In this document: positions 14,019 through 63,185 of the stretch, one piece after another
Layout: every line of letters starts with the position of its first letter
How positions within the stretch are numbered: the first letter of the stretch is position 1
Assembly (NCBI RefSeq): GCF_964188315.1
Contig: NC_135667.1
Coordinates: forward strand, 21,762,001 to 21,826,000
Direction of reading: 5' to 3'
Origin: Podarcis muralis
Lineage: Eukaryota
Length of the DNA stretch: 64,000 nucleotides
Made by a program: the position numbers and the translations under genes
Notes under the pieces: model-generated
Seen by the model: the letters and a program-made list of their open reading frames with translations, nothing else
Database searches by the model: none
Told to the model about the DNA's origin: nothing

Positions 14019-17000
14019 TTAATTTTTTCTGTATTTTCTTCTTATTAGCTCTTCCCTATTGTTCAGTTCAGGTCTCCATAATATAATGTAACATTTTGGT
14101 GAAAAGATGCACCCTAGCACCCCAGCGCTGGAGGCTAAGATAGAAAAGATCTCCACTGCAATCATGTATTTTCCTTTGGTGCTCAGGTAGGACGGAATAA
14201 AGGACAGCCAAACACTGCAAAAAACCAACATGCTAAAAGTGATAAACTTGGCTTCATTGAAACTGTCAGGTAACTTCCTGGCAAGGAAAGCCACAATGAA
14301 ACTGATAATGGCCAGGAAACCCATGTAGCCAAGAACAGAGTAAAAGAGAGTCACAGACCCCTCATTACATTCCAATATGATTTCATCTGTTACAGAGTGC
14401 ATGTCCACATCTGGGAATGGGGGGGAGGTTGCCAGCCACACCATACAGATACCTACCTGAACCAAGGAGCAGGACAGAACAATGGAGTTGGATAGTCTTT
14501 TCCCCACCCACACCCTCATCTGGGATCCTGGCCTGGTGGCCATGAAAGCTAGAACCACAGTGATTGTTTTTGCCAAGACGCATGAAACAGCCGCTGAAAA
14601 GATTATGCCAAAAGCAGTTTGTCGGAGGAGACATGTTACCTTCTCAGGTCGGCCAATGAATAGCAGTGTACAAAGGAAGCAGAGCAGGAGGGAGATGAGA
14701 AGAGTGTAGGTGAGGTCGCGGTTGTTGGCTTTGACGATGGGAGTGTCGTGGTGCTTCATAAATGTTCCTAGGATCAGAACTGTGATCAAAGCAAAGGACA
14801 GAGAAAAACAAGCTAAACTTATCCCTAATGGTTCTTCATAAGCCAAGAAGGTTACAGTCTTGGGAATACAGAAATCCTGGTTTTTGTTTGGATAGTTCCC
14901 ATCTGTGCATTTTTGGCAGTCGTTCATATCTGCAACATGAAATGATTTGGTCAAGCCATTAAGCTTTCTGGCACCAGTTTGAAGAACATGCCAGAGCTCT
15001 AAAACATTACAAGTTCTCTGTTTAAAATTAGTGCAGATATGATGAAATGTAGCAGAGGTTGAGTAGTTAAATTATTTTTAATGGCCAGCTTTTCACTGAT
15101 TTTTAAAAAAATCAAATAACAGATCACAGACACACTCCAGATTATTTTGTCTCCAGTAGCTTCCCCACAGCCTCTCCTTACCAAACTGTTCAATCATGCC
15201 ACCTAAGAAAAGTATTGCTATATAACTATTCCTCTTAATTATATATGAAATATATTTCTTACCATTCTGGTTTGAAATCTTCCCTTCTGGACATGGGATG
15301 CAATCATAACAGCAGAATAGCTGACCCTCCTTCACTATCTTGCTGTAACCAGGAGCACAACTCTTGCTACATATTGAAAGGGGTCGTGTCTCATACATGA
15401 AAGAGAATAAACATGTTCAGACTAAAGAGTTTGGGGTCCTTAAGTTTCTAGGGCTTTTCCATATGCATTTGAAATGACATGACAATTCAGTAATGTACAA
15501 ATGGGATCAATACTTCTTCTATTTCCCCCTTTTATAGCAATAAAAATGGCACAACATTGGAGCTCTCACCAATCTACATCGATTGGTGAGAGCCACAATG
15601 TTGTACCGTGGTCGATGGTATGAAAAGCCAATGAGGGATCGAAATGCATAAGCAAGGTCACACACCCCACCACTTTCAGGGCAAGCAAGGCCAATTCTAT
15701 TCTTTGGCCATTCCTGAACCCAGGTTGGGACTGGATGTAAGTAATCTGTGTCTTCCAAGGATGCCTGCAGCTGCCCTTACAGGGCCCTCTCTGACACCTC
15801 CCTGCCAAAGCGGATACTTACAACTGGTCAATAATTGTTCCAATCCAAGGGGTCCAGAGTTAGTTTCAGCAGGAACAGTCTCCCCACTGCCTCTTTCAAT
15901 GCATCACTTGCAAGGGGGACCACCCTCTTGTGCAGTGCAGTGTTAATCACACACTGGACCCAACTAGTCAGCCCCTGGCCCCTCTTGCTATAAGCCAGGA
16001 GGGATGGGGCCAAGGGAGCACATGTAATGGCCTCAAGTTGCAGCTCTGCTACCTAGAGATTAATATTTTAGTCATAAAAGGTCTAGCCCACCCTCCAACA
16101 TTTAATAAACCCAGGGCAGCTTAAAAATACAACATTCAACATTTGAATAATTCCCTACTTGTCTAGAATTGGATCCTACCTGGTTAAACCAGTTGTGCCA
16201 TGTTATGTCATCCTCACTGACTGTGAATGCTTGGTCTGCAGGACTCTCAGGATCAACCTTCCCAACTTTCACAGGACGAAATGATTGGTTCAAGGAAAAA
16301 ATCCAGTTGACAATGTCCAATCCAGCTACTACCTCCCCATTCTGGTTGAAGGATATTTTGTCCCCCACGCTGTTGTTAAATGAGATAACTCTAAGGAATT
16401 GATGGAGCTAAATAGAAACATAAAAGGCAAGACGTGAAAAAGGCTCCGTTAAGATCTTTCAGACGATGCTTCACATTTGAGTGGGAAAAGAATGATGCAA
16501 AATATGCCCATTCTTTATATCCCAGAGAAGACCACAAAAAGTCAAACAGGATGTCTCATTGGAATAAAGTCTATCGTGTCCTTTTTAGGTGGAAAGGAAA
16601 GGAAGGAAGAAGAAAATGTTAGCACAGTAAGAATTGGGAGAGAATAACATCCAATATACAGTGTGATGCCAAATGAAGGATTTTTAATTCAGTACCTGCC
16701 AGAGCTGTTGATTTTGAGGCTTTGGTCCTCTTTCATCCACCATTCCTCTCCGTTTGGGTATAGAAGAGGACATGTCATGTAACGCATGGGCCACAGCATA
16801 GACAGCATTGTAGATGCTGTAGCTATGACCAGTCATGGATAATTCAAAATAAGTTCCCGGAAGGCTTTCCATCTTCTCCCACCCTGTACAAATGTCTCCA
16901 CTCACATTATCCACAACCACATTAGGGAACGTGCAGCCAAATGCCTGTTGCCAGAATGGCATTATAAAACTATCTCCTCTTCTGTTGGATGGGATTCTGC

Positions 17001-18922
17001 TTGCAACAAATTGGGGGAAACTAGGTATATTACTGGAGTGAATTTTGAAGGACAGTGTGCCATGGAATGATTCAGTTTCCCATGTTCTTTGATAGACCAA
17101 TGAAGTGAACTCCACTTGTGCTGTCATTATCCATACTGTACCTTTTGGATTCTCGCTCATGTGTTCGAGTTGTGATACATATGGAAACCATCTGAAAATG
17201 GTCATGAAATATGATTCTCCATAGGCTACCACTACATTGGCTTTGCTGGCAATTATGGTATCATGAATTTTTGCTCCCATTTCTAGCATATCATTAATTC
17301 CACTGACAAAATTAAAACTGGGGATTTTTTCTAGGAAAGCAAAGCAGATACCATTTTTGGAAAACAGGGGAACTACAATATGTGCAAATCTTTCTCCAAT
17401 GTCATTATTCATAACAATGCCCCCAATCCACGTCCATCTAAAATGCAGCAGCAAAGAGAGAATCCCCATGTATTGTTGGCCTTCCTGAGGTGCCATCTGG
17501 TAGAAGGAAAGGCCTGGAGTTTTATCATTCATCACAGGAGCAGAACCATAAATGAGCTAAGGAAGTATTCACAACAGGGGAGAAAGACAATAATAAGAAT
17601 GCCATTTTCAAATGTAGGGGAAAACCCCCAATCCACATTCAATTAATAGTTAGAACAACCATCTAAGAAAGGGAAATTTTATTGTTCCTGTGACACAGAA
17701 AGGAATCTAATATTCAGGAAATGGGAGCCAGTCTATTGTCATCCAGTGAGTTCAATGCATAATGGATAACTGCTGTTGACTCTAATGAAAAGAAATAGAC
17801 TTGAACTCAAATACCTTTGCTAGGACACTCCATTAGAATGGAGTTAAACAATTCTACATCTCACCTACCTCAAAAATGGTTGTTTTATCGATGGGGAAAG
17901 CTATATTCTAAGGTGTTTTATGAACATGGAAGCAAGTAGTCCCCCATCTGAAAGTAAGACAAATTTTGCACTACTCTGAAGACCCTGAAAGCCACTCACC
18001 TTTTCATGAGAAGGGAAGTCTGGTGACAGTGTGTGTGTAGGTCTGTCTGTATAAGCCCCTGTCCTACTCCACAGCCTATATTTTGATATCAAATGCAATT
18101 GGATCAGACAGCAAGAAGTATGAGGCAGTGAAAAGGTTGGTTTCATGCCCATCTCCAACATGTCCAGGTTCATAATAAATATAGATTCCCCTCCCACACT
18201 GTAGCCAAAGGGGTGAGCACTTTTTATTGCTGGTTGAACTTTTACACATGTTTGGTTCTCAGAGTGTGGACCTTGACATGCAGATAAAAGTTAATCCTTA
18301 TCTGATCAGCTGCAACATTTAGCTGCAATGAAAGTTCATGAAGAATGTCTTTCTCAGCCAGCACAAGACAGTCATAAATAAATATAAGATCTGTGCACCC
18401 ATTTCTGACCCCAATCAATGAAATGAAAACAGAAAGAAAAAAATTCCAATACTCCGCAAATAACCTACCTGTGGAATCTTATAGATATCCAAGATGGTTG
18501 CAATGTAAAGGGATACTTCAGAGTCCAGTCCTCCAATGACTGCTGTCAGACTATTCTGGACACCACATGTGAAATTGGGGACAAACCTGTCTAGAGTGGA
18601 TTGAAATAGCAGAGTGGCCTGAAAGGTCCACTTTGCACTTAAATAGCTATCATAGATGTGGAAACCCAAGGTGACATTGGGTAAGAGCTGTGAGTTTTCA
18701 TTGATTTCCTTCACCGCATACTCCAAGGCCAAGATGTGTTGGTAGTGCTTAGGCACAATGCTAGAATGAGAGATGGATTCTGTATCAGAAGGGTTTCCCT
18801 TATGTCGGTAAAAAAGAGATGAATGGAAGAAAGAAGTGGAAGAAAATGTAAAGAAGAAGAAGAAGTAACGTAGCTTTGAAAAGTGTGACTATGTGGAGTA
18901 AAGGGAGCTTCTTTTCTTCAAT

Positions 18923-18982
<60 letters not shown>

Positions 18983-19356
18983 TTATTTGTATCCCGCCCT
19001 CCCCAGCCGAAGCTGAAATGTTACCATCATAACATTTTCTACAGCTCAAATGAATAACCCAGAGTTCTGCAAATCCAATACTTCATTATATTCTGATTAT
19101 TCTGGTGGAAGAAAGGAAGAAAGAAAAGTCCTCACACAAGCTCTTCCAGTAATGCTGCAGGGGGTTCTTCAGTGAAGGTGAATGAGCTGGAGATGAAGCG
19201 AGCCTGAGAGACAATTCCACCAATGATAAGATCACCTCGCTGATGGTACTTTTGAGGCGGAGGATGAGGACTATGGACCCTGCATTGAACATTGCAAACT
19301 TTGCATACCACGTGAGGAAGAAATACCAGCTGCAAGACCACTAAAATCGACTTCAT
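14019..19356 (-). CDS. Vomeronasal type-2 receptor (V2R) gene A, intact, ~879 aa
   Basis: Exons 19136-19356, 18469-18760, 16696-17556, 16180-16407, 15263-15389, 14019-14929 (2640 nt, in frame). Signal peptide, Venus-flytrap domain ([24 protein letters not shown]), Cys-rich domain ([12 protein letters not shown]) and 7TM ([21 protein letters not shown]). Confidence 0.93.
15595..15870 (-). mobile_element. Old L2 LINE reverse-transcriptase fragment
   Basis: Degenerate translation [37 protein letters not shown], resembling the L2 RT region preceding GVPQG. Confidence 0.6.
18926..18985. repeat. (AAT)n microsatellite, the tail of a short LINE 3' stub
   Basis: About 19 AAT units; the duplicate site at ~30398-30420 has only ~5. 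Confidence 0.9.
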
Positions 19357-19495
19357 GAGTACAATGGAAATATTCCTTCTACACCCAGATTCTCTTATTT
19401 TGTTCTTCCACAGTAAAATTGGGGTTTCTGTGATGATAAGTGTCTGCTAGTTTGGTCTGCTGATAGGCCAGAAGCCAGGAATATCAGAGTTCAAA

Positions 19496-19679
19496 CTGTA
19501 GAATAGAAACTATAGAATGAAAAGCAGAGGTGTGCAGAAGAGAGGTCAGAATCTACTAATACATGGTATTATGAGTGTAGTTCTGGTTCTGAAAAGAAAT
19601 TCCAGGGCTGAGCATGTGCTCAAAGGTATCCTGTTCCCTAATCCTTAGGATATGTTGTCTCCCTGCTGCTATCTGATAC
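19496..19679 (-). other. Candidate 5'UTR intron of V2R gene A (also present in B)
   Basis: Donor CCAG|GTATCA and a long pyrimidine tract ending CTACAG|, lying between the TATA-homologous site and the ATG. Confidence 0.45.
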
Positions 19680-20544
19680 CTGGCTCCACTGGTGGTTCTT
19701 GGGCTTCTATAATAAAACAAAGGAGATTTTGCAAGCCTGATATCTGCCTGCTCCTGGTGCCAAGTGTCCAAGTCCTCTCTCTGGTTCTAAATGGTAGTGG
19801 CTATACTTATGACATTGTTCACCATCTTATCTATTAGTTTTGCTCATGATCCCTGAAACTGTCTTGGATTTTTGAGAAGTAGCGGAGTTATAATTAGAGT
19901 TCTTTTAATAATGAGAGAAGCGGGCTATTATGGTCAAAATTGGGTATTCCTGTGGGTTTTGAGATTGCAGCAGAATTAATCACCATCATTTTGGTCATTA
20001 AATAGGAAGTTAATCACCATCTGAAATCTGGGGAATTGCTGAAGAAATCTTGTTTTTCACATCTGAACTATAGCTTTCTCTCCTTTTAAGAGAGTAGGAC
20101 TTGGAATGACAGAGAACAAGAAAATGATACCAAGAAAGCTTGCCACACTTTTGTGACATTATTTTGGTTCTTCCCAAGGCAAGGCATTTCTCAAGTGTAG
20201 ATTCCAGCAATAAAAGACTGGTGTGGGAGCAGAGAAGTAATGATTATACTTGTTGATGCAGCTGAGCTTCTTGAGAATATGCCAAATAAAAGACGTTTGC
20301 TCAATAATCTTTTTGTAATTTTGAAATAATATTTTAAACCGCCCCCCCTCCAATCCAACCCTGTGTTATTTTTGGCTTTTGCAACCTGAGCATGCCACTG
20401 TTGCAGGGGGAAAGTCCTTTAACCTATCATACTGTGTAATGGAATACAGTTAGCAGAGCTGTCTGTCCAGGGTTATATCTTTCATTTACGGTATATACAG
20501 AAAACCCACAACTCATGCATATTAATTTGTGTTCATTTAACTTT

Positions 20545-20785
20545 NNNNNNNNNNNNNNNNNNNNNNNNNNNNNNNNNNNNNNNNNNNNNNNNNNNNNNNN
20601 NNNNNNNNNNNNNNNNNNNNNNNNNNNNNNNNNNNNNNNNNNNNNNNNNNNNNNNNNNNNNNNNNNNNNNNNNNNNNNNNNNNNNNNNNNNNNNNNNNNN
20701 NNNNNNNNNNNNNNNNNNNNNNNNNNNNNNNNNNNNNNNNNNNNNNNNNNNNNNNNNNNNNNNNNNNNNNNNNNNNNNNNNNNNN
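20545..20785. other. Assembly gap (~240 N)
   Basis: N run with the same flanks as the gap at 31972-32183. Confidence 0.99.
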
Positions 20786-20884
20786 TAGATGTCCAAGAAA
20801 CAACATTGTCATTTTGAGAATTTGAAATTTTGGTTTCAGTGCAATCCCTGGAATGTAATCCCCACATAAGTTATGGGCTTACTG

Positions 20885-21135
20885 TACAGTGGCACCTCGG
20901 GTTACAGATGCTTCAGGTTACATGATTTCGGGTTGCGCATCGTGCCGAACCTGGAAGTACGGGAATGGGTTACTTCCGGGTTTTGGCACTCGTGCTAAAT
21001 TGCACTTTGGGCATGTGCAGAAGTGCCGAATCGTGACCCACGCATGCGCAGACGTGGCGCTGCGAGTTGCGAACGCTGCAGGTTGTGAACGTGCCTCCTG
21101 CACGGATCACATTCACAACCCAAGGCTCCACTGTA
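20885..21135. mobile_element. Tc1/mariner-pogo-type MITE
   Basis: TA-CAGTGGCACCTCGGGTT ... AACCCAAGGCTCCACTG-TA; duplicated at 32283-32547. Confidence 0.8.
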
Positions 21136-21286
21136 TTTCAATGTAGCAGTTTCAGTGGTACAGACCGTAGTGCTTTTCTGGTCAAGTTTGACTTTAAATT
21201 GGCCTTTATTCTGCAGCCAGGGCATTACATAGGGTAGCTGCTGAAAATAAGATTCTCACAAACTATTGTATACAGAAACAAATTAT

Positions 21287-24200
21287 TCATTCTTTTCTTC
21301 TTATTAGCTGTTCCTTGTTGTTCAGCTCAGGTCTCAAAATAATAATGTAGCATTTGGGGGAAAAGATGCAACCCAGCAAGCCAGCGCTGGAGGCTAAAAT
21401 GGAAAAGATCTCCACAGCAACCATGTATTTTCCCTTGGTGCTCAGGTAGGTTGGAACAAAGGACAACCAAACACTGCAAAAAACCAACATGCTGAAAGTT
21501 ATGAACTTGGCTTCGTTGAAACTGTCCGGCAACTTCCTGGCAAGGAATGCCACAATGAAACTGACAATGGCCAAGAAGCCCATGTAGCCAAGAACAGAGT
21601 AAAACAGAGTCACAGACCCCTCATTACATTCTAGTATAATTTCTTCAGTCATTGAGTGCCTGTCAGCATCTGGGAATGGAGGAGAGGTTGCCAGCCATAA
21701 AGTACAAATGCCTACTTGAATAACAGAGCAGGAAAGAACAATGGTGTTAGCTAGCTTTTTCCCCACCCACTTCCTCATCCTGGATCCTGGCCTGGTGGCC
21801 ATGAATGCAAGAACCACTGTGATGGTTTTTGCCAAGACACAAGAAATAGCCACAGAGAAGACACTTCCAAAAACTGTTTGTCGCAGGAGACACGTCACCA
21901 TCTCAGGTTGGCCAATGAACTGTAAAGCACACAGGAAGCAGAGCAAGAGGGAGATGAGGAGAATGTAGGTGAGGTCACGGTTGTTGGCTTTGACGATGGG
22001 AGTGTCATGGTGCTTCATAAATGTTCCTAGGTTCAGAACTGTGATCAAAGCAAAGGACAGAGAAAAACAAGCTAAACTGACCCCTAATGGTTCTTCATAA
22101 GACAAGAAGGTTACAGTCTTGGGAATACAGAAATCCTGGTTTTTGTTTGGATAGTTCCCATCTGTGCATTTCCGGCAGTCGTTCATATCTGCAACATGAA
22201 AAAGATTTTGTCTTACGCCATTAATCTTGTAAGAAATGGCAAAATCATTCCTCTAGGACCAATAAAAACCATGTAGAGTGGTACCTCGGGTTACATACGC
22301 TTCAGGTTACATACGCTTCAGGTTACACACTCCGCTAAACCAGAAATAGTGCTTCAGGTTAAGAACTTTGCTTCAGGATAAGAACAGAAATCGGGCTCCA
22401 GCAGTGCGGCAGCAGCAGGAGGCCCCATTAACTAAAGTGGTGCTTCAGGTTGAGAACAGTTTTAGGTTAAAAACAGACCTCCGGAACGAATTAAGTACTT
22501 AACCCGAGGTGCCCCTGTATTCAAGTTACATGATAAATTTAATGCTGTTACTCTGCAATGTGGCAGCATCTGGTATTTAAATCTGGAGGTTTTAAAGTCA
22601 TTTAAATAGATATAAGTCCAACTTTCTGTTTAGGCATGAAGATGTAGTAAACCAGCTGTGATCATAGAGCCCTGCTAATGGTGACTGGAGTCCAATTATC
22701 ATTAAACCTTCAACAAAAATCGACTGCATCAGTGTATTGGACACACAGCATGTTGGGTATCGCTGACCTCACATTAGTTTTTAAAAAATAAAATATGTGC
22801 CATTAACATACCTATAATTATTTATATAGTTGCTAAAATATTAAACATGTATACAATATTGCAAATAATGATTGTACAACTGAGCAAGAATAATCTGTTG
22901 TGAATTACTGGTAACAATGAGTATTCAGATCTTGCGAGCATAACATACGCTTCCTGAGCAGCCTACGCACATGTAGGTGGACAAAACAGTTGATTAAAGC
23001 ATATGGTTGCTGCAATTTTCGGTCATTGCATTAGTTGCAAAGATGACACCCTTCTCTTTTCTCAGTGTCAGCAGTGCTAGGTGCTACTACTTCTGAGGGT
23101 GCCTTGCTTGATGTCCCAGGGAAAGTGGCTTTGTTTTTAACTCAACCCACTACTTGATTTAGGGATCACAGAGGAGTTTTATTTAATCTGCATTATGGAG
23201 TGAACCTGTGCATTCCATCCCTCCCAGAGCCATGTGCAGAAATGGATTATTCTGCATCTATGCAAACTGATGTGCACATGGTGATATGATAGCCATGTTC
23301 AAATATATAAAAGGATGTCACATAGAGGAGGGAGAAAGGTTGTTTTCTGCTGCTCCAGAGAAGCGGACACGGAGCAATGGATCCAAACTACAAGAAAGAA
23401 GATTCCACCTAAACATTAGGAAGAACTTCCTGACAGTAAGAGCTGTTCGACAGTGGAATTTGCTGCCAAGGAGTGTGGTGGAGTCTCCGTCTATGGAGGT
23501 CTTTAAGCAGAGGCTTGACAACCATATGTCAGGAGTGCTCTGATGGTGTTTCCTGCTTGGCAGGGAGTTGGACTCGATGGCCCTTGTGGTCTCTTCCAAC
23601 TCTATGATTCTATGATTCTATGGGCAAGAGGTGGTCCAAAGATGGTCTTCTTTATTAACAGTTTACAGTAGGGACCAGAGGAGAAATGACCACTGGGGGG
23701 AGTGCAGAGAGAAGAAAGACCATGGTGCATCTGTAGCAACAAAACCGGACTCCTTCATCTGCCCCATCTGCAGTAAAACATGTCTCTCCTGTATCAGTTT
23801 CTACAGCAACAGCAGGCACTGCAGCTCTTCAATGGTTTGATCTCAACCCTGAAGGCACACTCTTTCATTGTCTCCTGAGACAGATGAATGCCATCAACAA
23901 CAGTTGCTGCTTGGAGCACCAAGAAAAACCCATGCTCCATGGGCTGCTCTATGCAGGGGTCAGCAACATTTTTCAGCCGTGGGCTGGTCCAACATCCCTC
24001 AGACCATGTGGTGGGCTGGACTATATTTTTTGGGGGGAAATGAGTGAATTCCTATGCCCCGCAAATAACCCAGAGATGCATTTTAAATAAAAGGACACAT
24101 TCTACTCATGTAAAAACACCAGGCTGGCCCCACAAATAACCCAGAGATGCATTTTAAATAGAAGGACACATTCCACTCATGTAAAAACACGCTGATTCCC

Positions 24201-27200: not shown

Positions 27201-30200
27201 CAGATCGTGAAGCTGAGGCTCCAAAACTTTGGCCACGTCATGAGAAGAGAAGACTCCCTGGAAAAGACCCTGATGTTGGGAAAGATGGAAGGCACAAGGA
27301 GAAGGGGATGACAAAGGACGAGATGGTTGGACAGTGTTCTCGAAGCTAGCAGCATGAGTTTGACCAAACTGCGGGAGGCAGTGGAAGACAGAAGTGCGTG
27401 GCGTACTCTGGTCCATGAGGTCACGAAGAGTCGGACACGACTAAACAACTAAACAACAACAACAACAAGCTGGAAATTGTGCTTTGGGCTGAACACTGCC
27501 CAAAGAAATTAAATGTGCAGATTTGAAGTGAATGTTCACTCAACATTTGAATACTTCCTTGTCTGCTAAACATTGTACCATACCTGGTTAAACCAGTTGT
27601 GCCATGTTATGCCTTCATCTCTGATAGTGAATGCTTGGTCAGCAATGCTCCCAACTTTCACAAGATGAAAGGACTGGTTTGAGTGCAGAATCCAGTTGAC
27701 AATATCCAATCCAGCTACTACCTCTCCATTCTCATTGAAGACTACTTTGTCCCCCACACTGTTGTTAAATGAAACACCTCTGAGAACGCGATGGAGCTAA
27801 ATTGAAAGAGAAAAGGTAAGACTTTAGAAAGGGCTGCATTGGGATCTTTCAGATTAAGGTTCAATGGCAGCAGCAAAACAACTTTGTATATTTGTGTGGG
27901 GAAAGGGTTATGGAAGACATGCTCATTCTTGATGATGAAGAGATTGCATGAAGGACTTGTACACGAATCTGCAAAAATTAGTACAATGTACATATAGTAA
28001 ATTAACAAACCACAAACATTAATAAAGAAAAGCAAATTGACATAGGGACTATTACCGTATATGCTGTCACATGTGGAAGGAAGAAGACAATAGTAGCAGA
28101 GTAAGAATTGGGAGAGAATACCATCCAATATACAGTGTGATGCCAAATGAAGGATTTTTAATTCAGTACCTGCCACAGCTGTTGATTTTGAAGCTTTGGT
28201 CCTCTTTCATCCACCATTCCTCTCCGTATGGGTATAGAATAGGACATGTCATGTAACGCATGGGCCACAGCATAGACAGCATTGTAGATGCTGTAGCTAT
28301 GACCAGTCATGGATAATTCAAAATAGGTTCCTGGAAGGCTTTCCATCTTCTCCCACCCTGTACAAATGTCTCCACTCACATTATCCACAACCACATTAGG
28401 GAACGTGCAGCCAAATGCCTGTTGCCAGAATGGCATTATAAAACTATCTCCTCTTCTGTTGGATGGGATTCTGCTTGCAACAAATTGGGGGAAACTAGGT
28501 ATATTACTGGAGTGAATTTTGAAGGACAGAGCTCCATGGAATGATTCGGTTTCCCAAGTTCTTTGATAGACCAATGAAGTGAACTCCACTTGTGCTGTCG
28601 TTATCCACACTGTACCTTTTGGATTTTCGCTCATGTGTTTGAGTTGGGATACATATGGAAACCATCTGAAAATGGTCATGGAATATGATTCTCCATAGGC
28701 TACCACTACATTGGCTTTGCTGGCAGTTATGGTATCATGAATTTTTGCTCCCATTTCTAGCATATCATTAATTCCACTGACAAAATTAAAACTGGGGATT
28801 TTTTCTAGGAAAGCAAAGCAGATACCATTCTTGGAAAACAGGGGAACTACAATATGTGCAAATCTTTCTCCGATGTCATTATTCATAAGAATGGCTCCAA
28901 TCCATGTCCATCTAAAATGCAGCAGCAAAGATAGAATCCCCATGTATTGTTGGCCTTCCGGAGGTGCCATCTGGTAGAAGGAAAGGCCTGGAGTTTTATC
29001 ATTCATCACAGGAGCAGAACCATAAATGAGCTAAGGAAGTATTCACAACAGGGGAGAAAGACAATAATAAGAATGTCATTTTCAAATGTAGGGGAAACCC
29101 CCAATCCACATTCAATTAATAGTTAGAACAACCATCTAAGAAAGGGAAATTTTATTGTTCCTGTGACACAGAAAGGAATCTAATATTCAGGAAATGGGAG
29201 CCAGTCTATTGTCATCTAGTGAGTGCAATGCTTAATGGATAACTGCTGTTGACTCTAATGTAAAGAAATAGACTTGAACTCAAATACCTTTGCTAGGACA
29301 CTCCATTATAATGGAGTTAAACAATTCTTCATCTCATTCCTCAAAAATGGCTGTTTCATCAATGGGGAAAGCTATATTCTAAGGTGTTTTATGAACTTGG
29401 AAGCAAGTAGTCCCCCATCTGAAAGTAAGACAAATTTTGCACTACTCTGAAGACCCTGAAAGCCACTCACCTTTTCATGAGAAGGGAAGTCTGGTGACAG
29501 TGTGTGTGTAGGTCTGTCTGTATAAGCCCCTGTCCTACTCCACAGCCTATATTTTGATATCAAATGCAATTGGCTCAGAGAGCAAGACGTATGAGGCAGT
29601 GAGAAGGTTGGTTTCATGCCCATCTCCAACATGTCAAGGTTCATAATAAATATAGATTCCCCTCCCACACTGTAGCCAAAGGGGTGAGCACTTTTTATTG
29701 CTGGTTGAACTTTTACACATGTTTGGTTCTCAGAGTGTGGACCTTGACATGCAGATAAAAAGTTAATCCTTATCTGATTAGCTGCAACATTCAGCTGCAA
29801 TGAAAGTTCATGAAGAATGTCTTTCTCAGCCAGCACAAGACAGTCATAAATAAATATAAGATCTGTGCACCTATTTCTGACCCCAATCAACGAAATGAAA
29901 ACAGAAAGAAAAAAATTCCAATACTCCACAAATAACCTACCTGTGGAATCTTATAGATATCCAAGATGGTTGCAATGTAAAGGGATACTTCAGAGTCCAG
30001 TCCTCCAATGACTGCTGTCAGACTATTCTGGACACCACATGTGAAATTGGGGACAAACCTGTCTAGAGTGGATTGAAATAGCAGAGTGGCCTGAAAGGTC
30101 CACTTTGCACTTAAATAGCTATCATAGATGTGGAAACCCAAGGTGACATTGGGTAAGAGCTGTGAGTTTTCATTGATTTCCTTCACCGCATACTCCAAGG

Positions 30201-30791
30201 CCAAGATGTGTTGGTAGTGCTTAGGCACAATGCTAGAATGAGAGATGGATTCTGTATCAGAAGGGTTTCCCTTATGTCGGTAAAAAAGAGATGAATGGAA
30301 GAAAGAAGTGGAAGAAAATGTAAAGAAGAAGAAGAAGTAACGTAGCTTTGAAAAGTGTGACTATGTGGAGTAAAGGGAGCTTCTTTTCTTCAATGTTAAT
30401 ATAATAATAATTATAATTTATTTGTATCCCGCCCTCCCCAGCTGAAGCTGAAATGTTACCATCATAACATTTTCTACAGCTCAAATGAATAACCGAGAGT
30501 TCTGCAAATCCAATACTTCATTATAATCTGATTATTCTGGTGGAAGAAAGGAAGAAAGAAAAGTCCTCACACAAGCTCTTCCAGTAATGCTGGAGGGGGT
30601 TCTTCAGTGAAGGTGAATGAGCTGGAGATGAAGCGAGCCTGAGAGACAATTCCACCAATGATAAGATCTCCTGGCTGATGGTACTTTTGAGGCGGAGGAT
30701 GAGGACTATGGACCCTGCATTGAACATTGCAAGCTTTGCATACCACGTGAGGAAGAAATACCAGCTGCAAGACCACTAAAATCGACTTCAT
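21287..30791 (-). CDS. V2R gene B, intact chimeric receptor, ~871 aa
   Basis: Exons 30571-30791, 29941-30232, 28170-29030, 27584-27796, 24637-24763, 21287-22188 (2616 nt, in frame, all GT-AG). Exons 1-3 are near-identical to gene A and exons 4-6 are near-identical to gene C. Confidence 0.92.
22274..22519. mobile_element. Tc1/mariner-pogo-type MITE
   Basis: TA-(C/G)AGTGGTACCTCGGGTT ... AACCCGAGGTGCCCCTG-TA; duplicated at 33686-33931. Confidence 0.8.
23282..23620 (+). mobile_element. CR1 LINE 3' end, 5'-truncated, absent from the duplicate unit
   Basis: ORF2 C-terminus ([44 protein letters not shown]) and an (ATTCTATG)n tail; the empty site CACATGGGCAAG is at ~34688-34699. Confidence 0.9.
23622..23905 (+). 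mobile_element. Old RTE-clade LINE 3' end (duplicate at ~34694-34975)
   Basis: C-terminal zinc-finger-like [16 protein letters not shown] and a ..GAGACAGATGAATGCCATCAACAAC tail. Confidence 0.55.
23954..24274. mobile_element. hAT-type MITE
   Basis: CAGGGGTCAGCAAC ... GTTGCCTACCCCTG, with an internal ~65-bp tandem duplication not seen in the copy at 35026-35277. Confidence 0.78.
25180..25700 (-). mobile_element. Possible old L1-like LINE ORF2 fragment (duplicate ~36150-36690)
   Basis: Remnant translation [19 protein letters not shown] resembles the post-RT region of squamate L1/Tx1; heavily degraded. Confidence 0.35.
25851..26229 (-). mobile_element. Sauria SINE, full length
   Basis: tRNA-related head (GGGACACGGGTGGTGCTGTGGTCTAAACC), core CATGCTGGCCACATGACC, BovB-like 3' end and an (ACCTTT) tail. 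Confidence 0.88.
26304..27466 (+). mobile_element. BovB (RTE) LINE, 5'-truncated with an internal deletion
   Basis: RT-region translation ([24 protein letters not shown]), (CAA)n tail and a degenerate 11-bp TSD AAACCGGAAAT / AAGCTGGAAAT; the empty site is at ~37293-37303. Confidence 0.92.
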
Positions 30792-31971
30792 GAGTACAAT
30801 GGAAATATTCCTTCTACACCCAGATTCTCTTATTTTGTTCTTCCACAGTAAAATTGGGGTTTCTGTGATGATAAGTGTCTGCTAGTTTGGTCTGCTGATA
30901 GACCAGAACCCAGGAATACCAGAGTTCAAACTGTAGAATAGAAACTATAGAATGAAAAACAGAGGTGTGCAGAAGATAGGTCAGAATCTACTAATACATG
31001 GTATTATGAGTGCAGTTCTGGTTCTGAAAAGAAATTCCAGGGCTGAGCATGTGCTCAAAGGTATCCTGTTCCCTAATCCTTAGGATATGTTGTCTCCCTG
31101 CTGCTATCTGATACCTGGCTCCACTGGTGGTTCTTGGGCTTCTAAAATAAAACAAAGGAGATTTTGCAAGCCTGATATCTGCCTGCTCCTGGTGCCAAGT
31201 GTCCAAGTCCTCTCTCTGGCTCTAAATGGTAGTGGCTATACTTATGACATTGTTCACCGTCTTATCTATTAGTTTTGCTCATGATCCCTGAAACTGTCTT
31301 GGATTTTTGAGAAGTAGCGGAGTTATAATTAGAGTTCTTTTAATAATGAGAGAAGCGGGCTATTATGGTCAAAATTGGGTATTCCTGTGGGTTTTGAGAT
31401 TGCAGCAGAATTAATCACCATCATTTTGGTCATTAAATAGGAAGTTAATCACCATCTGAAATCTGGGGAATTGCTGAAGAAATCTTGTTTTTCACATCTG
31501 AACTATAGCTTTCTCTCCTTTTAAGAGAGTAGGACTTGGAATGACAGAGAACAAGAAAATGATACCAAGAAAGCTTGCCACACTTTTGTGACATTATTTT
31601 GGTTCTTCCCAAGGCAAGGCATTTCTCAAGTGTAGATTCCAATAATAAAAGACTGGTGTGGTAGCAGAGAAGTAATGATTATACTTGTTGATGCAGCTGA
31701 GCTTCTTGAGAATATGCCAAATAAAAGACGTTTGCTCAATAATCTTTTTGGAATTTTGAAATAATATTTTAAACGGCCCCCCCCAATCCAACCCTGTGTT
31801 ATTTTTGGCTTTTGCAACCTGAGCATGCCACTGTTGCAGAGGGAAAGTCCTTTAACCTATCATACTGTGTAATGGAATACAGTTAGCAGAGCTGTCTGTC
31901 CAGGGTTATATCTTTCATTTACGGTATATACAGAAAACCCACAACTCATGCATATTAATTTGTGTTCATTT

Positions 31972-32183
31972 NNNNNNNNNNNNNNNNNNNNNNNNNNNNN
32001 NNNNNNNNNNNNNNNNNNNNNNNNNNNNNNNNNNNNNNNNNNNNNNNNNNNNNNNNNNNNNNNNNNNNNNNNNNNNNNNNNNNNNNNNNNNNNNNNNNNN
32101 NNNNNNNNNNNNNNNNNNNNNNNNNNNNNNNNNNNNNNNNNNNNNNNNNNNNNNNNNNNNNNNNNNNNNNNNNNNNNNNNNNN
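31972..32183. other. Assembly gap (212 N)
   Basis: N run at the position homologous to the first gap (left GTGTTCATTT, right TAGATGTCCAAG). Confidence 0.99.
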
Positions 32184-32282
32184 TAGATGTCCAAGAAACA
32201 ACATTGTCATTTTGAGAATTTGAAATTTTGGTTTCAGTGCAATCCCTGGAATGTAATCCTCACATAAGTTATGGGCTTACTG

Positions 32283-32547
32283 TACAGTGGCACCTCGGGT
32301 TACAGATGCTTCAGGTTACATGATTTCGGGTTGCGCATCGTGCCGAACCTGGAAGTACGGGAATGGGTTACTTCCGGGTTTTGGCGCTCGTGCATGTGCA
32401 GAAGCACTAAATTGCACTTTGGGCATGTGCAGAAGTGCCGAATCGTGACCCACGCATGTGCAGACGTGGCGCTGCGAGTTGCGAACGCTGTGGGTTGTGA
32501 ACGTGCCTCCTGCACAGATCACATTCACAACCCAAGGCTCCACTGTA
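32283..32547. mobile_element. Tc1/mariner-pogo-type MITE (duplicate copy)
   Basis: Same TIRs and TA flanks as 20885-21135. Confidence 0.8.
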
Positions 32548-32698
32548 TTTCAATGTAGCAGTTTCAGTGGTACAGACCGTAGTGCTTTTCTGGTCAAGTT
32601 TGACTTTAAATTGGCCTTTATTCTGCAGCCAGGGCATTACATAGGGTAGCTGCTGAAAATAAGATTCTCACAAACTATTGTATAAAGACACAAATTAT

Positions 32699-35600
32699 TC
32701 ATTCTTTTCTTCTTATTAGCTGTTCCTTGTTGTTCAGCTCAGGTCTCAAAATAATAATGTAGCATTTGGGGGAAAAGATGCAGCCCAGCAAGCCAGCGCT
32801 GGAGGCTAAAATGGAAAAGATCTCCACAGCAACCATGTATTTTCCCTTGGTGCTCAGGTAGGTTGGAACAAAGGACACCCAAACACTGCAAAAAACCAAC
32901 ATGCTGAAAGTTATGAACTTGGCTTCGTTGAAACTGTCCGGCAACTTCCTGGCAAGGAATGCCACAATGAAACTGACAATGGCCAAGAAGCCCATGTAGC
33001 CAAGAACAGAGTAAAACAGAGTCACAGACCCCTCATTACATTCTAGTATAATTTCATCAGTCATTGAGTGCCTGTCAGCATCTGGGAATGGAGGAGAGGT
33101 TGCCAGCCATATAGTACAAATGCCTACTTGAATAACAGAGCAGGAAAGAACAATGGTGTTAGCTAGCTTTTTCCCCACCCACTTCCTCATCCTGGATCCT
33201 GGCCTGGTGGCCATGAATGCAAGAACCACTGTGATGGTTTTTGCCAAGACACAAGAAATAGCCACAGAGAAGACACTTCCAAAAACTGTTTGTCGCAGGA
33301 GACACGTCACCATCTCAGGTCGGCCAATGAACTGTAAAGCACACAGGAAGCAGAGCAAGAGGGAGATGAGGAGAATGTAGGTGAGGTCGCGGTTGTTGGC
33401 TTTGACGATGGGAGTGTCATGGTGCTTCATAAATGTTCCTAGGTTCAGAACTGTGAGCAAAGCAAAGGACAGAGAAAAACAAGCTAAACTGACCCCTAAT
33501 GGTTCTTCATAAGCCAAGAAGGTTACAGTCTTGGGAATACAGAAATCCTGGTTTTTGTTTGGATAGTTCCCATCTGTGCATTTCTGGCAGTCGTTCATAT
33601 CTGCAACATGAAAAAGGTTTTGTCTTACGCCATTAATCTTGTAAGAAATGGCAAAATCATTCCTCCAGGACCAATAAAAACCATGTACAGTGGTACCTCG
33701 GGTTACATACGCTTCAGGTTACATACGCTTCAGGTTACACACTCCGCTAAACCAGAAATAGTGCTTCAGGTTAAGAACTTTGCTTCAGGATAAGAACAGA
33801 AATCGGGCTCCTGTGACACGGCGGCAGCAGGAGGCCCCATTAGCTAAAGTGGTGCTTCAGGTTAAGAACAGTTTCAGGTTAAGAATGGACCTCCGGAACG
33901 AATTAAGTACTTAACCCGAGGTGCCACTGTATTCAAGTTACAGGATAAATTTAATGCTGATACTCTGCAATGTGGCAGCATCTGGGTATTTAAATCTGGA
34001 GGTTTTAAAGTCATTTAAACAGATATAAGTCCAACTTTTGGTTTAGGCATGAAGATGTAGTAAACCAGCTGTGATCATAGAGCCCTGCTAATGGTGACTG
34101 GAGTCCAATTATCATTAAACCTTCAACAAAAATTGACTGCATCAGTGTATTGGACACACAGCATGCTGGGTATAGCTGACCTCACAGTAGTTTTTAAAAA
34201 ATAAAATATGTGGCATTAACATACCTATAATTATTTATATAGCTGCCACAATATTAAACATGCATACAATATTGCAAATAATGATTGTACAACTGAGCAA
34301 GAATAATCTGTTGTGAATTAGTGGTAACAATGAGTATTCAGATCTTGCAAGCATAACATACGCTTCCTGAGCAGCCTATGCAGATGTAGGTGGACAAAAC
34401 AGTTGCAAAAAGCATATGGTTGCTGCAATTTTCTGTCATTGCATCAGTTGCAAAGATGACACCCTTCTCTTTTCTCAGTGTCAGCGGTGCTAGGTGCTAC
34501 TACTTCTGAGGGTGCCTTACTTGATGTTCAAGGGAATGTAGCTTTGTTTCTAGACTCAACCCAGTGCTTGATTTAGGGATCACAGAGGAGTTTTATTTAA
34601 TCTGCATTATGGAGTGAACCTGTGCATTCCATCCCTCCCAAAGCAATGTGCAGAAATGGATTATTCTGCATCTATGCAAACTGATGTGCACATGGGCAAG
34701 AGGTGGTCCAAAGATGGTCTTCTTTATTAACAGTTTACAGTAGGGACCAGAGGAGAAATGACCACTGGGGGGAGTGCAGAGAGAAGAAAGACCATGGTGC
34801 ATCTGTAGCAACAAAACCGGACTCCTTCATCTGCCCCATCTGCAGTAAAACATGTCTCTCCTGTATCAGTTTCTACAGCAACAGCAGGCACTGCAGCTCT
34901 TCAGTGGTTTGATGTCAACCCTGAAAGTACACTCTTTCATTCTCTCCTGAGACAGATGAATGCCATCAACAACAGTTGCTGCTTGGAGCACCAAGAAAAA
35001 CCCATGCTCCATGGTTGCTCTATGTCAGGGGTCAGCAACCTTTTTCACCCATGGGCCGGTCCACCGTCCCTCAGACCATGTGGTGGGCGGGACTATATTT
35101 TTTCTGGGGGTAAGTGAACAAATTCCTATGCCCCACATGTAACTCAGAGATGCATTTTAAATAAAAGGACACATTCTACTCTTGTAAAAACATACTGATT
35201 CCCAGACCGTCCATGGGCCAGATTGAGAAGGCAACTGGGCTGCATCCGGCCCATGGGCCTTAGGTTGCCTACCCCTGCTCTATGTCATAATATGCATAGT
35301 ATATGCACATATTTCATTTTAAACTGAATTGCCCCCCCCCAGTTCACACCATCATTGGCTGTTCAAGTGCCACTAGAATCGGAAACTGCCCCCCCGGCTA
35401 CTGTTTGATAAAGTATGTGGACATGTATGTGGAAACCATCTGCTCTTACATGGCCATATCACCTTTAATACATGTTTAATCATAAAGAATGATGTCCACC
35501 ATATATAGCAAAACTTATGTCCCAGAGTGCAGAAGAGTAATAACCTCACCCCCCCCCCTTTTTAAGCAGTTCTGTATACCTATTCCTCTGGATTATATTT

Positions 35601-38600
35601 GGTCTATTTGGTAAACCAGTAGAATATATTTTTTACCCTTCTGCTCTGAAATCTTCCCTTCTGGACATGGGATGCAATCATAGCAGCAGAATGGCTCCCC
35701 CTCCTTCACCTTCTTGCTGGACCCAGGGTGGCAACTCTCAGTACATATGGAAAGAGGCTGCGTCTAATCCAAATATGAAAGAGGAGAACAATGTTCAGAA
35801 TGAAGAGCTTGGAATCCTTAAATGTCCAGGAATTTTCCATATGCTTCCAAAGTGACAAGACTATTCTGTAATGTATGAATGGGCTCAAAGCTACAACCAT
35901 TTTCTTTTTCTACAAACAATTAATACGGTACAGCGTTATTCTTTTATTTATACCTACACAGACAACATATTGTAAAAACTGAACAGGTTTCTATAAATTT
36001 GGTCGCAATTTTGCTTCCTACACAGTAGTATGGTTTCACTATTGTTGCCATCTTTTTAAAAAGAATAATTCAGAGTTGGAATATCTTTTTTCTTCCACTT
36101 TTTTTACAAGATGACAGTGATTTTGTTCACTGCCATTTCCCTCCAAATTGACTCTTGTTTTAATGCATATACTGGGCACAGTATTTTCAACAAAATACAA
36201 CATCTTATTGAAAATATTTGTAACATGGTGGCAACAATCCTATTTTTCTCTGTTAAATCTCCAAATTATGAACTCCCTTCCCCCCTAATTAATGAAATGT
36301 GATCCCTGATTTCTCCTAAGAAATCTATTAGTTTTATTATAGAAGCCAGAGGGGAGATACCTGGACTTAATTTATTTTTATACTTATCCCATATTTCTAA
36401 TAATCGTGATAGTGTCACATTCTGCTTCAGAGCTTTTCCCCTCTATTTACCCCTTAGCAAATATTTCCAATGTAATAAAAACAATAAAAACAATCTATTA
36501 CAAGGGAATAGGAGAGGGAAATGCAGAAAACAGAGGTGAAACAACAGAATATATATATAGGGTGGGAAAATGGTATATTGAACATCATTCCAGAGGTTAT
36601 AATTAAATTGCCAGTTTTCACAATTATTATTGGAAGGAGTCCTTCAAGAGGATCTGATTAGTTTCTTTTAAATCACTTCTAAAGGGGAAATCTGGACTAT
36701 TATTTCATTATCTGCTTCTCTCAGTAAGCGTAGATGGAGCAGCAGGTACCACCCCTTCCCACAAGGAAATATTCAACATGGACCCACCGGATCAACTCTC
36801 CCTCACTTGATTTCACCAGCCATGATGGGAAGGGTTTGAGAGGACATGTTAAAAAAGGTAAAGGACCCCTGAGAGTTCAGTCCATTTGCGAATGACTCTG
36901 GGGTTGCGGCGCTCATCTCACTTTACTGGCCGAGGGAGCCGGCATTTGTCTGCAGACTGTTTTTCTGGGTCATGTGGCCAGCATGACTTAGCCACTTCTG
37001 GCACAACGGAACACTGAAACCAGAGCAGCGCACGGAAATGCCGTGTACCTTACCACCATATTGGTACCTATTTATCTACTTGCACTTTGACGTGCTTTCA
37101 AACTGCTAGGTTGGCAGCAGCAGGGACTGAGCAACGGGCACTCACCCCGTCACGGGGAGACAAACTGCCAACCTTCCGATCAGCAAGCCGAAGGCTCAGT
37201 GGTTTAGACCACAGCACCACCCATGTCCCCTTGAGAGGGCATGTAGTTAGACACATTTCTGCAAGCACCCTCTTCACATAATTAGGCCATATAAGCCGCA
37301 AATTGTGCTTTGGGCTGAACACTGCCCAAAGAAATTAAATGTACAGATTAGAAGTGAATGTTCACTCAACATTTGAATACTTCCTTGTCTGCTAAAAATT
37401 GTACCATGCCTGGTTAAACCAGTTGTGCCACGTTATGCCATCATCTCTGATAGTGAATGCTTGGTCGGCAATGCTCCCAACTTTCACAAGATGAAAGGAC
37501 TGGTTTGAGTGCAGAATCCAGTTGACAATATCCAATCCAGCTACTACCTCTCCATTCTCATTAAAGAATACTTTGTCCCCCACACTGTTGTTAAATGAAA
37601 CATCTCTGAGAACGCGATGGAGCTAAATTGAAAGAGAAAAGGTAAGACTTTAGAAAGGGCTGCATTGGGGTCTTTCAGATTAAGGTTCAATGGCAGCAGC
37701 AAAACAACTTTGTATATTTGTGTGGGAAAAGGGTTATGGAAGATATGCTCATTCGTGATGACAAAGAGATTGCATGAAGGACTTGTACATGAATCTGCAA
37801 AAATTAGTACAATGTACATATAGTAAATTAACAAACCACAAACATTAAAACAGAATAGCAGATTGACATAGGGACTATTATATTCTGTCAATGTGTAAGG
37901 AAGAAGAAAATGTTAGCACAGTAAGAATTGTGAGAAAAAACCATCCAATATACAGTGTGATGCCAAATGAAGGATTTTGAATCCAGTACCTGCCACAGCT
38001 GTTGATTTTGAAGCTTTGGTCCTCTTTCATCCACCATTCCTCTCTGTTTGGGTACAGATGAGGACATATCATGTAAAGCATGGGCCACAGCGTAGACAGC
38101 ATTGTAGATGCTGTAGCTGTGACCAGTCATGGTTAATTCAAAATAAGTTCCCGGAAGGCTCTCCATCTTCTCATGCCCTGTACAAATATCTCCATTTATA
38201 TTGTCCACAACAGTATTTGGAAACTCACACCCAAATGCCTGTTTCCAGAATGCTGTAATAAAACCATCTTCTGTTCTGCTAAATTGGATTCTTGCAACAA
38301 ATTGGGGGAAACTAGGTATATTACTGGAGTGAATTTTGAAGGACAGAGCTCCATGGAATAAATCTGTCTCCCAGTTTCTTTGATAGGCCAGTGAAGTGAA
38401 TTCCACTTGTGCTGTTGTTATCCATACTGTACCCTTTGGTTTATTTCTCATGTGTTCGAGCCCTGATATATATGGAAGCCATCTGAACATTGTCATGGAA
38501 TAAGATTCTCCATACGCCACCACAATGTTGGCTTTGCTGCTCATCACTTTATCATGTATTTTTGCCCCCTGATTTATCATGTCATTAGTTTCAGAGACAA

Positions 38601-39466
38601 AACTATAACCAGGGATTCTTTCTAGGAAGGCAAAACACACACCATTCTTGGAAAACAGAGGAACTACAATTTGCACGAATTTTTCACCATTGTCATTATC
38701 CATAACAACTAGCCCAATCCACGTCCACCTAAAATGCAGCAACAAAGAGAGAATCCCCATGTACTGTTGGCCTTCCTGAGGCGCCATCTGGTAGAAGGAA
38801 AGGCCTGGGGTCTTATCATTCATCATTGGAGCAGAACCATATATGAGCTAGGCAGGTATTAATAATGGGGGAGAAAGACAATAAAAAACATGCCACTTGC
38901 AAGTATTAAAAGGAATGCACATTAAATTAATAGTTATAACTATCCACCAAGATAAATGAATGTCTTTGTTTGCATGATAGAGATAGGAATTTAATATTTA
39001 GGTAGCAGGAGGCAGCCTATGGTCATCTAGTGAGTTCAAGGTGGGACAGAGATCTGCATTAGACTCCAGTGATAGAATAGATGTTGGAGAAAAGTAGAGA
39101 CCTGAATGAAAGGGTTATCCAGGAAGGGGACAGGGGAAGGTGTTAGAGTTCACAAGTACATTTTACATGGGATGGGTATTGATAGTGGAGGATAAGAAAA
39201 CCTCCTCACTGCCACACATGATTCTCTGAAGCGCGTCTTAAAACCACAGTTGCCTTGCTGGAAATGTTGCTCTTTGGGGGAAACTCAGGTGCCAAAATTT
39301 TCTCTTCTGCACTTTGAGAAAAATAGGGAGGAGAAGGTGAACTACAGAAATTTAAAAGCATATTTCCTATGGCCATTGAGATCTGGGATAAAATAGCCTC
39401 CTCACCTGCACACATAATTCTGAGAACCTCTGGTTTTTAGGGAATTGTAGGGGAAGGGCCATAGCT

Positions 39467-39510
<44 letters not shown>

Positions 39511-42999: not shown

Positions 43000-43333
43000 A
43001 CACTTAACCTGAACATCACAAGAAAACTGACAATGTCCAAGAAGCCAATGTAGCTAAGAACAGAGTAAGTTAGAGTCAAAGACCCCTCATTACATTCAAA
43101 GACCATTTCTTCAGTCATTGGATGCCTGTAAGCATCTGGGAATGGGGGAGAGGTTGCCAGCCAAACAGTACAAATGCCTGCTTGAATAACAGAGCAAAAA
43201 AAGAACAATGGAGTTAGCTAGTCTTTCCCCCACCCAGTTCCTCATCCTGAATCCTGGTGGCCATGAATGCAAAAACCACTTGATGGGTTTTCTCCCAGTA
43301 CACAAGAAACAGCCACAAAGAATACAATCCATA
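43000..43333 (-). pseudogene. Isolated, frameshifted V2R exon-6 (TM3-TM5) relic
   Basis: Translates in pieces to ..[66 protein letters not shown].. with frameshifts. It is closest to exon 6 of B/C, and no other exons are seen nearby. Confidence 0.85.
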
Positions 43334-63110: not shown

Positions 63111-63185
63111 GTAATCCCTTCTACAGCACTGTCAATACATTAAAACTGGCTAACCTGAAAAGTAGTTTAATTTCACGAGAGGCTA

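Follow-up and report, generated by a model that had tools for sequence, protein, structure and literature searches.

The 64,000-nucleotide stretch of Podarcis muralis DNA analysed here (the window; assembly GCF_964188315.1, contig NC_135667.1, positions 21,762,001 to 21,826,000 of the forward strand, with positions below counted from its first letter) carries five paralogous six-exon genes of the vomeronasal type-2 receptor (V2R) family, A to E, which lie in tandem and all on the minus strand. Gene B is a mosaic with an intact reading frame. Its exons 1-3, which sit behind a copy of the promoter of gene A, are of the type of gene A, its exons 4-6 are of the type of gene C, and the two parts meet at a single junction in intron 3, which is also present in DNA from an independent study. 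We infer that B very probably arose as a hybrid when the ancestors of A and C underwent one unequal crossover in intron 3, guided by homology, and that patchy gene conversion between the resulting copies followed.

Gene models were made by splice-site alignment and translation. In these models, gene B has exons of 219, 330, 861, 213, 127 and 902 nt, all of its introns have GT-AG borders and the whole gene is contained in the gap-free stretch 20786-31971 (Table 1). The initial annotation, which was made from the sequence alone, had assigned exons 1-3 of B to A and exons 4-6 to C, and this assignment is confirmed by alignments, site patterns and trees. Across exons 1-3, 191 sites group A with B to the exclusion of C and 11 group B with C to the exclusion of A, whereas in exons 4-6 the pattern is reversed, with 157 sites uniting B and C and four uniting A and B. 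In maximum-likelihood trees with genes D and E as outgroups, exons 1-3 place B with A (support 100/100) and exons 4-6 place it with C (support 100/99), so that the sister of B switches from A to C between the two halves, as had been predicted, and approximately unbiased (AU) tests reject the opposite groupings (p 1.25e-5 and 4.5e-5). A and C are distant from each other in both halves, with a synonymous divergence (dS) of 0.36-0.44 and a residue identity of 79.5% for exons 1-3 and 84.7% for exons 4-6. B, on the other hand, is close to A in exons 1-3 (dS 0.054, 97.0% residue identity) and close to C in exons 4-6 (dS 0.022, 97.6% residue identity), which identifies it as the recombinant among the three genes. 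A single-breakpoint scan of all DNA that can be aligned between A, B and C peaks at the junction with a chi-square value of 868; to its left, 426 sites are C-type and 12 are A-type, and to its right, 530 sites are A-type and 18 are C-type.

In the three-way alignment, B is C-type as far as position 28075 and turns A-type with the letter at 28076. This switch lies 94 nt from the donor of the 373-nt intron 3, and further A-type markers are found at 28111, 28116 and 28119. At the end of exon 3, B and C do not differ over 55 nt, and the diagnostic letters of this exon are hence located at 28225 and above. The initial annotation had thus placed the switch in the correct intron, but its limits of 28053 and 28100 were too wide by some 20 nt at either end. 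The matching parental positions, 16601 in A and 37895/6 in C, are homologous positions of intron 3. This intron is in phase 0 (...QQLWQ|LHRVLR...), which agrees with the earlier assignment, and since the exchange took place at homologous positions of a phase 0 intron, the hybrid would have been in frame at once. DNA from outside the assembly also contains the junction. A 240-nt contig from run X13, which belongs to a different study from 2019, aligns to 27907-28151 and bridges the junction with 169 nt on its left and 76 nt on its right. This contig differs from the reference by five substitutions and a 5-nt deletion, and three of the differences restore a C-type letter or a letter shared by A and C where the reference B has a private one, indicating that X13 carries a different allele of the same hybrid. 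The initial annotation had named concordant trees of the two halves, or a lack of reads across the junction, as grounds for refuting the hybrid, and the results on both points went in favour of it. Runs X1 and X3 have the reference letters over 28035-28088 (positions 28035, 28053 and 28088) and were not counted as bridging the junction. In 18 DNA runs from five studies, at least half of the words sampled from the junction stretch are present, and B therefore appears to be widespread in the species.

The hybrid gene is part of a larger rearrangement, as a unit of 11.4 kb is present twice, head to tail, with the junction as the border between the two copies (Table 1). In a self-BLAST search, 16601-20538 matches 28075-31971 with 97.5-98.4% identity, which covers the A-type part of intron 3, exons 3-1 and about 1.2 kb of upstream DNA, and 20786-26303 matches 32184-37303 with 95-97% identity at the same offset of about 11.4 kb, covering the C-type 3' flank, exons 6-5 and introns. 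Beyond a transposon insertion in intron 4, 27478-28075 matches C once more. When aligned globally, the A-type halves of the two copies agree at 98.0% of 3896 sites, and the C-type halves at 96.5% of 5102 sites. A collinear head-to-tail duplication whose single junction falls at homologous positions of two paralogues is what an unequal crossover between them should leave behind, and together with the intact parental genes it supports the crossover that the initial annotation had suggested. We propose that two chromatids were misaligned by one gene, with the ancestor of A paired with the ancestor of C, and that non-allelic homologous recombination took place within the first ~100 nt of intron 3, at homologous positions in both genes. 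The duplication product would have carried A, the hybrid and C in this order, with both parents kept intact, and the duplicated unit would have comprised the A promoter and exons 1-3, the spacer and exons 4-6 of C. Afterwards, conversion patches would have formed between the copies, and B would have gained a transposon fragment, a short transposon and point changes. The origin of the gene in one step, as first claimed, would hence apply to the in-frame hybrid itself and not to the present-day B, which has been altered by later conversion, two insertions and private changes.

Several observations weigh against this reading. To begin with, a single event predicts that the two copies of the unit have diverged equally along their length, but the non-coding divergence is 4.35% in the 3' half and 1.89% in the 5' half (p 1e-7), and individual windows range from 0/400 differences to 8% (chi-square 154, df 23). 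There are 0/400 differences around exon 2 (29982-30381 versus 18510-18909), about 1% divergence over exon 6 and the 3' flank (20786-22385 versus 32184-33790) and 6-8% divergence in parts of introns 4-5. This range of 0-8% had not been described in the initial annotation. The pattern points to later gene conversion between the unit copies, which is an added assumption for a model with one event, and due to this patchiness no single date can be given for the event. It makes a history of one event with nothing after it less likely, and leaves the hybrid origin of B as it is. One might then ask if conversion alone produced B, that is, if a third gene already existed as a whole-gene duplicate of C or A and one of its halves was overwritten by long conversion tracts. 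The patchy divergence makes it clear that gene conversion has been active at the locus, the two halves differ in their mean divergence as such a history would allow, and there are small reversed patches such as 28530-28533 in exon 3, where three sites within 4 nt are shared by B and C but differ in A, owing either to a change of several bases in A or to conversion over a very short tract. However, B is A-like without interruption from intron 3 to an assembly gap, across exon 1 and the 1.18 kb of spacer upstream of it, and C-like sequence follows directly beyond the gap. The upstream DNA shared by A and B has no detectable homologue upstream of C, and a conversion tract would therefore have had no homology to end in. 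The overwriting of a pre-existing gene would also need at least two events with end points that coincide at homologous positions of intron 3, and we consider it improbable as the origin of B.

The second set of opposing observations comes from the junction itself. It is located at the left edge of a 1.15-kb block in which A and C are 84% identical, so that strong homology is found only on its right side, whereas on its left the alignment of A and C is weak and broken by indels. A purine run is present at this site (GGAAGGAAGAAGA at 28075-87 in B; 16591-16616, 26 nt, in A; 37897-910 in C). Moreover, about 12 changes private to B crowd into 28023-28099, and A-type and C-type letters are interleaved over 28111-28192. 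Replicative repair is known for error-prone synthesis close to its breakpoints and would fit the crowding of private changes equally well. The same hybrid could thus have been produced by a replication-based, microhomology-mediated template switch at the purine tract, either by fork stalling and template switching or microhomology-mediated break-induced replication (FoSTeS/MMBIR) or by break-induced replication. The position at the extreme edge of the homology block, the poor homology to the left and the roughly 12 private changes within 80 nt around the junction would be in line with such an event. On the other hand, the breakpoints in A and C are exactly homologous and lie inside a 34-nt stretch in which A and C are identical. 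In addition, the X13 contig retains the ancestral state for at least three of the private changes (at 28035, a 5-nt insert at 28053, and at 28088), which hence arose after the exchange; since some of the changes close to the junction are polymorphic, they cannot all date from the event. The interleaved letters over 28111-28192 resemble a patch-repaired heteroduplex. The cluster of private changes and the interleaving could be due to patchy repair of a heteroduplex, to error-prone repair synthesis or to a local hot spot. Taking these points together, we give the template switch as little credence as the overwriting of a third gene and favour the unequal crossover.

A third point concerns the assembly, as there are two gaps between A and C, and the order A-B-C depends on the scaffold. 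These gaps are the only two runs of N in the window, and neither interrupts an exon, an intron or a reading frame. Both are at the same position of the unit, with right flanks that start at the same homologous base and left flanks that end within 6 nt of each other, which suggests that a feature of the spacer resists assembly in both copies. The stretch between them, 20786-31971, is exactly one unit long, and one might suspect a chimeric contig or a misplaced haplotype copy in a genome that holds only A and C, all the more as intron 3 of A and intron 3 of C have an identical word of 37 nt in common, which might lead a graph assembler astray. Yet this stretch differs by 2-4% from both A and C throughout and contains two private transposon insertions, and is hence not a copy of either. 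It is also circularly permuted relative to the order A-spacer-C, which rules out a haplotype copy. A search of the genome found no further A-like 3' half or C-like 5' half, the junction stretch has no other copy with more than 75% identity in the 1.52-Gb genome, and the non-coding DNA specific to the unit occurs exactly twice genome-wide. Finally, the X13 contig from an independent study crosses the junction as a different allele. An assembly artefact is therefore largely refuted by the permuted unit, the divergence, the insertions, the copy search and the independent contig, and we reject it as highly improbable.

Both insertions are absent from C and had not been noticed in the initial annotation. 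The first is a 3' fragment of a long interspersed nuclear element (LINE) in intron 4, which is flanked by the target-site duplication AAACCGGAAAT / AAGCTGGAAAT, and the corresponding empty site in C is AAGCCGCAAAT at 37293-37303. The second is a short interspersed nuclear element (SINE) in intron 5 with a (ATTCTATG)n tail. More than 35 copies with 98-99% identity to this SINE are spread over many chromosomes, indicating that the family was active very recently.

That B is a V2R, a class C G protein-coupled receptor, follows from its domain order, its exon plan and its nearest named relatives, which are V2Rs and not members of the CaSR, T1R or mGluR families. Pfam searches of its exons identified ANF_receptor in exon 2 (E 3e-9) and exon 3 (E 7e-23), NCD3G in exon 5 (E 8e-16) and 7tm_3 in exon 6 (E 3e-87); exon 4 by itself gave no Pfam match. 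Exon 3 spans positions 81-294 of the 353 positions of the ANF_receptor profile and thus the bulk of the ligand-binding domain. The nearest Atlas protein clusters carry the automatically annotated name 'vomeronasal type-2 receptor 26(-like)' (scores 0.95-0.97), and the best match among solved structures is the calcium-sensing receptor (CaSR), with an E value of only 1.7e-17. A plan of six exons with a long exon 3 and the seven-transmembrane (7TM) domain in the last exon is shared by A, C, D, E and 12 genes of another array, and a search of the 1.52-Gb genome gave at least 40 matches to exon 3 on the chromosome of B, which makes this a large tandem family. In the B protein, residues 1-470 are A-type and comprise the signal peptide along with the larger part of the Venus-flytrap ligand-binding domain, whereas residues 471-883 are C-type and comprise the end of the flytrap domain, the cysteine-rich domain and the 7TM domain. 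The description of B as a swap of sensor and transducer modules is therefore approximate, as the last 71 residues ahead of the cysteine-rich domain are encoded by the C-type exon 4 and, judged by Pfam coordinates, still belong to the end of the ligand-binding domain.

B retains 24/24 of the cysteines that are invariant in A, C, D and E, and it departs from these genes at 3/488 family-invariant columns. On the branch leading to B, 11 nonsynonymous and 11 synonymous changes were counted after polarisation with the other parent and D and E, compared to 78% nonsynonymous changes expected under neutrality (one-sided binomial p 0.0036), although the counts are small and some of the changes are polymorphic. 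This gives modest evidence for constraint on B, and judging from its sequence we think that B is probably a working receptor. A fourth observation on the opposing side is that, among the runs listed as containing the junction stretch, none is on record as RNA. Run X19, which is RNA by guess, contains exon-only pieces at 28268-28509 (exon 3) and 30071-30242 (exon 2), but their letters are shared with A and hence carry no information on B.

A caveat of another kind concerns the wider role of intron 3. A second V2R array on the same chromosome (G000:C13:12790001-12990000, 200 kb) is a regular series of 12 intact genes of six exons each, spaced at about 9-20 kb on the minus strand, along with partial genes and one plus-strand gene. 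Trees of exons 2-3 and of exons 4-6 of these 12 genes contain the same two clades without supported conflict, and this one small sample thus gives no sign of intron 3 as a general swap point. One might speculate that B is expressed and functions with the promoter and binding pocket of A and the transmembrane half of C, and that the purine tract near the beginning of intron 3 is a site of repeated exchange. From the sequences at hand we regard this combination as rather unlikely; if it were true, lizard V2R arrays would diversify by shuffling of binding and signalling modules in addition to whole-gene duplication.

Hybrid genes that originate from unequal crossover are known from red/green opsins and from haemoglobin anti-Lepore. 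In tandem receptor arrays, they have been described for KIR genes (Traherne et al., 2010, PMC2816608), and the FCGR3B/A chimera is another such hybrid (PMC8183472). As proposed for B, misaligned paralogues recombined at homologous non-coding positions in the KIR and FCGR cases and gave an in-frame hybrid between intact parents, with the promoter and ligand-binding exons from one parent and the signalling exons from the other. For KIR, non-B DNA or repeats have been discussed at the exchange site, and in B a purine tract is present at the junction. The KIR and FCGR cases are mostly segregating human variants with parents that are more than 90% identical, whereas the parents of B are distant (dS ~0.4, 15-20% of residues) and the hybrid is older (2-8% non-coding divergence) and apparently widespread. 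Unequal crossover is also a general source of tandem chemoreceptor arrays (review PMC11526382). The tandem expansions of squamate V2Rs (Brykczynska et al., 2013, PMC3590772) concern the same family, the same lizard- and snake-specific kind of array and the same general process. In the passages searched, that study and the review deal with whole-gene duplication and mention gene conversion only as a possibility. A V2R hybrid whose intron breakpoint has been mapped was not found in the literature searched. A further parallel is the promoter capture in rodent FPR and V1R genes (Dietschi et al., 2017, as cited in PMC11526382 and PMC7873101). According to these accounts, a rearrangement in a vomeronasal receptor cluster joined the 5' and regulatory part of one gene to the coding part of a second gene and created a new chemoreceptor in one step, similar to what we propose for B; it did so, however, between unrelated families and with a change in tissue expression, whereas both parents of B are V2Rs and the exchange is at homologous positions inside the coding region.

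B is thus a clean but ordinary case of a textbook route to new members of a tandem family, and it leaves the view of receptor-array evolution unchanged. Its value lies in the natural domain swap that it provides, with parents that differ at 15-20% of residues still intact alongside it. The ligands of V2Rs are mostly unknown and the receptors are hard to express, and the A/B/C trio would allow direct tests of whether ligand choice goes with the flytrap domain, whether trafficking or coupling goes with the 7TM half and whether the promoter copy of B confers the neuronal choice pattern of A. For annotation, the lesson is that V2R trees based on a single exon can mislead.

Table 1. Positions of gene B, its parental genes and associated features in the window.
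Feature	Position	Strand	Description
Gene A	14019..19356	-	Intact, 891 aa, six exons; donor of the 5' half of B
Gene B (hybrid)	21287..30791	-	Intact frame, 883 aa, six exons
Gene C	32699..41876	-	Open frame, 881 aa; donor of the 3' half of B
B exon 1	30573..30791	-	A-type; 4/219 differences vs A, 49/216 vs C
B exon 2	29941..30270	-	A-type; 0/330 differences vs A, 31 vs C; start of ANF_receptor
B exon 3	28170..29030	-	A-type; 26/861 differences vs A, 130 vs C
B intron 3	27797..28169	-	373 nt, phase 0
B exon 4	27584..27796	-	C-type; 6/213 differences vs C, 36 vs A; end of the ligand-binding domain
B exon 5	24637..24763	-	C-type; 1/127 differences vs C, 22 vs A; NCD3G cysteine-rich domain
B exon 6	21287..22188	-	C-type; 9/902 differences vs C, 111 vs A; 7tm_3 and stop codon
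Transition zone	28058..28192		From the three-way alignment; the contig of run X13 spans 27907-28151
Unit copy 1	16601..28075		Part of A intron 3, A exons 3-1, A upstream DNA, gap, B 3' flank, B exons 6-4, part of B intron 3
Unit copy 2	28076..37895		Part of B intron 3, B exons 3-1, B upstream DNA, gap, C 3' flank, C exons 6-4, part of C intron 3
Assembly gap A/B	20545..20785		Intergenic; 1189 nt upstream of the A ATG, 502 nt downstream of the B stop
Assembly gap B/C	31972..32183		Intergenic; 1181 nt upstream of the B ATG, 516 nt downstream of the C stop
LINE 3' fragment	26304..27467	+	In B intron 4; 11-bp target-site duplication, (AAC)n-type tail
SINE	23282..23619	+	~340 bp, in B intron 5; empty site in C near 34692

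Among the remaining features of the window, all introns of the gene models have GT-AG borders except for intron 4 of gene C. The donor of C exon 4 at 37408-37409 (minus strand) is GC, whereas it is GT in B and the other paralogues; GC-AG splicing may still take place, or C may be weakened. Between C and D, a lone fragment at 43017-43326 is 77-86% identical to part of exon 6 (7TM) of A, B and C and is probably the remnant of a lost gene. Gene E has an open frame with an uncertain start codon: ACA is found at 63066-63068 in place of the ATG of D, and an in-frame methionine codon is present further upstream (open frame 62850-63131), so that the gene may use an earlier start or may be damaged. Gene D has an open frame of 896 aa. 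Its intron 2 contains copies related to the LINE fragment of B in the opposite orientation (49967-51364), and a 489-aa open frame at 49986-51452 (minus strand) in the same intron has the look of a LINE reverse transcriptase.

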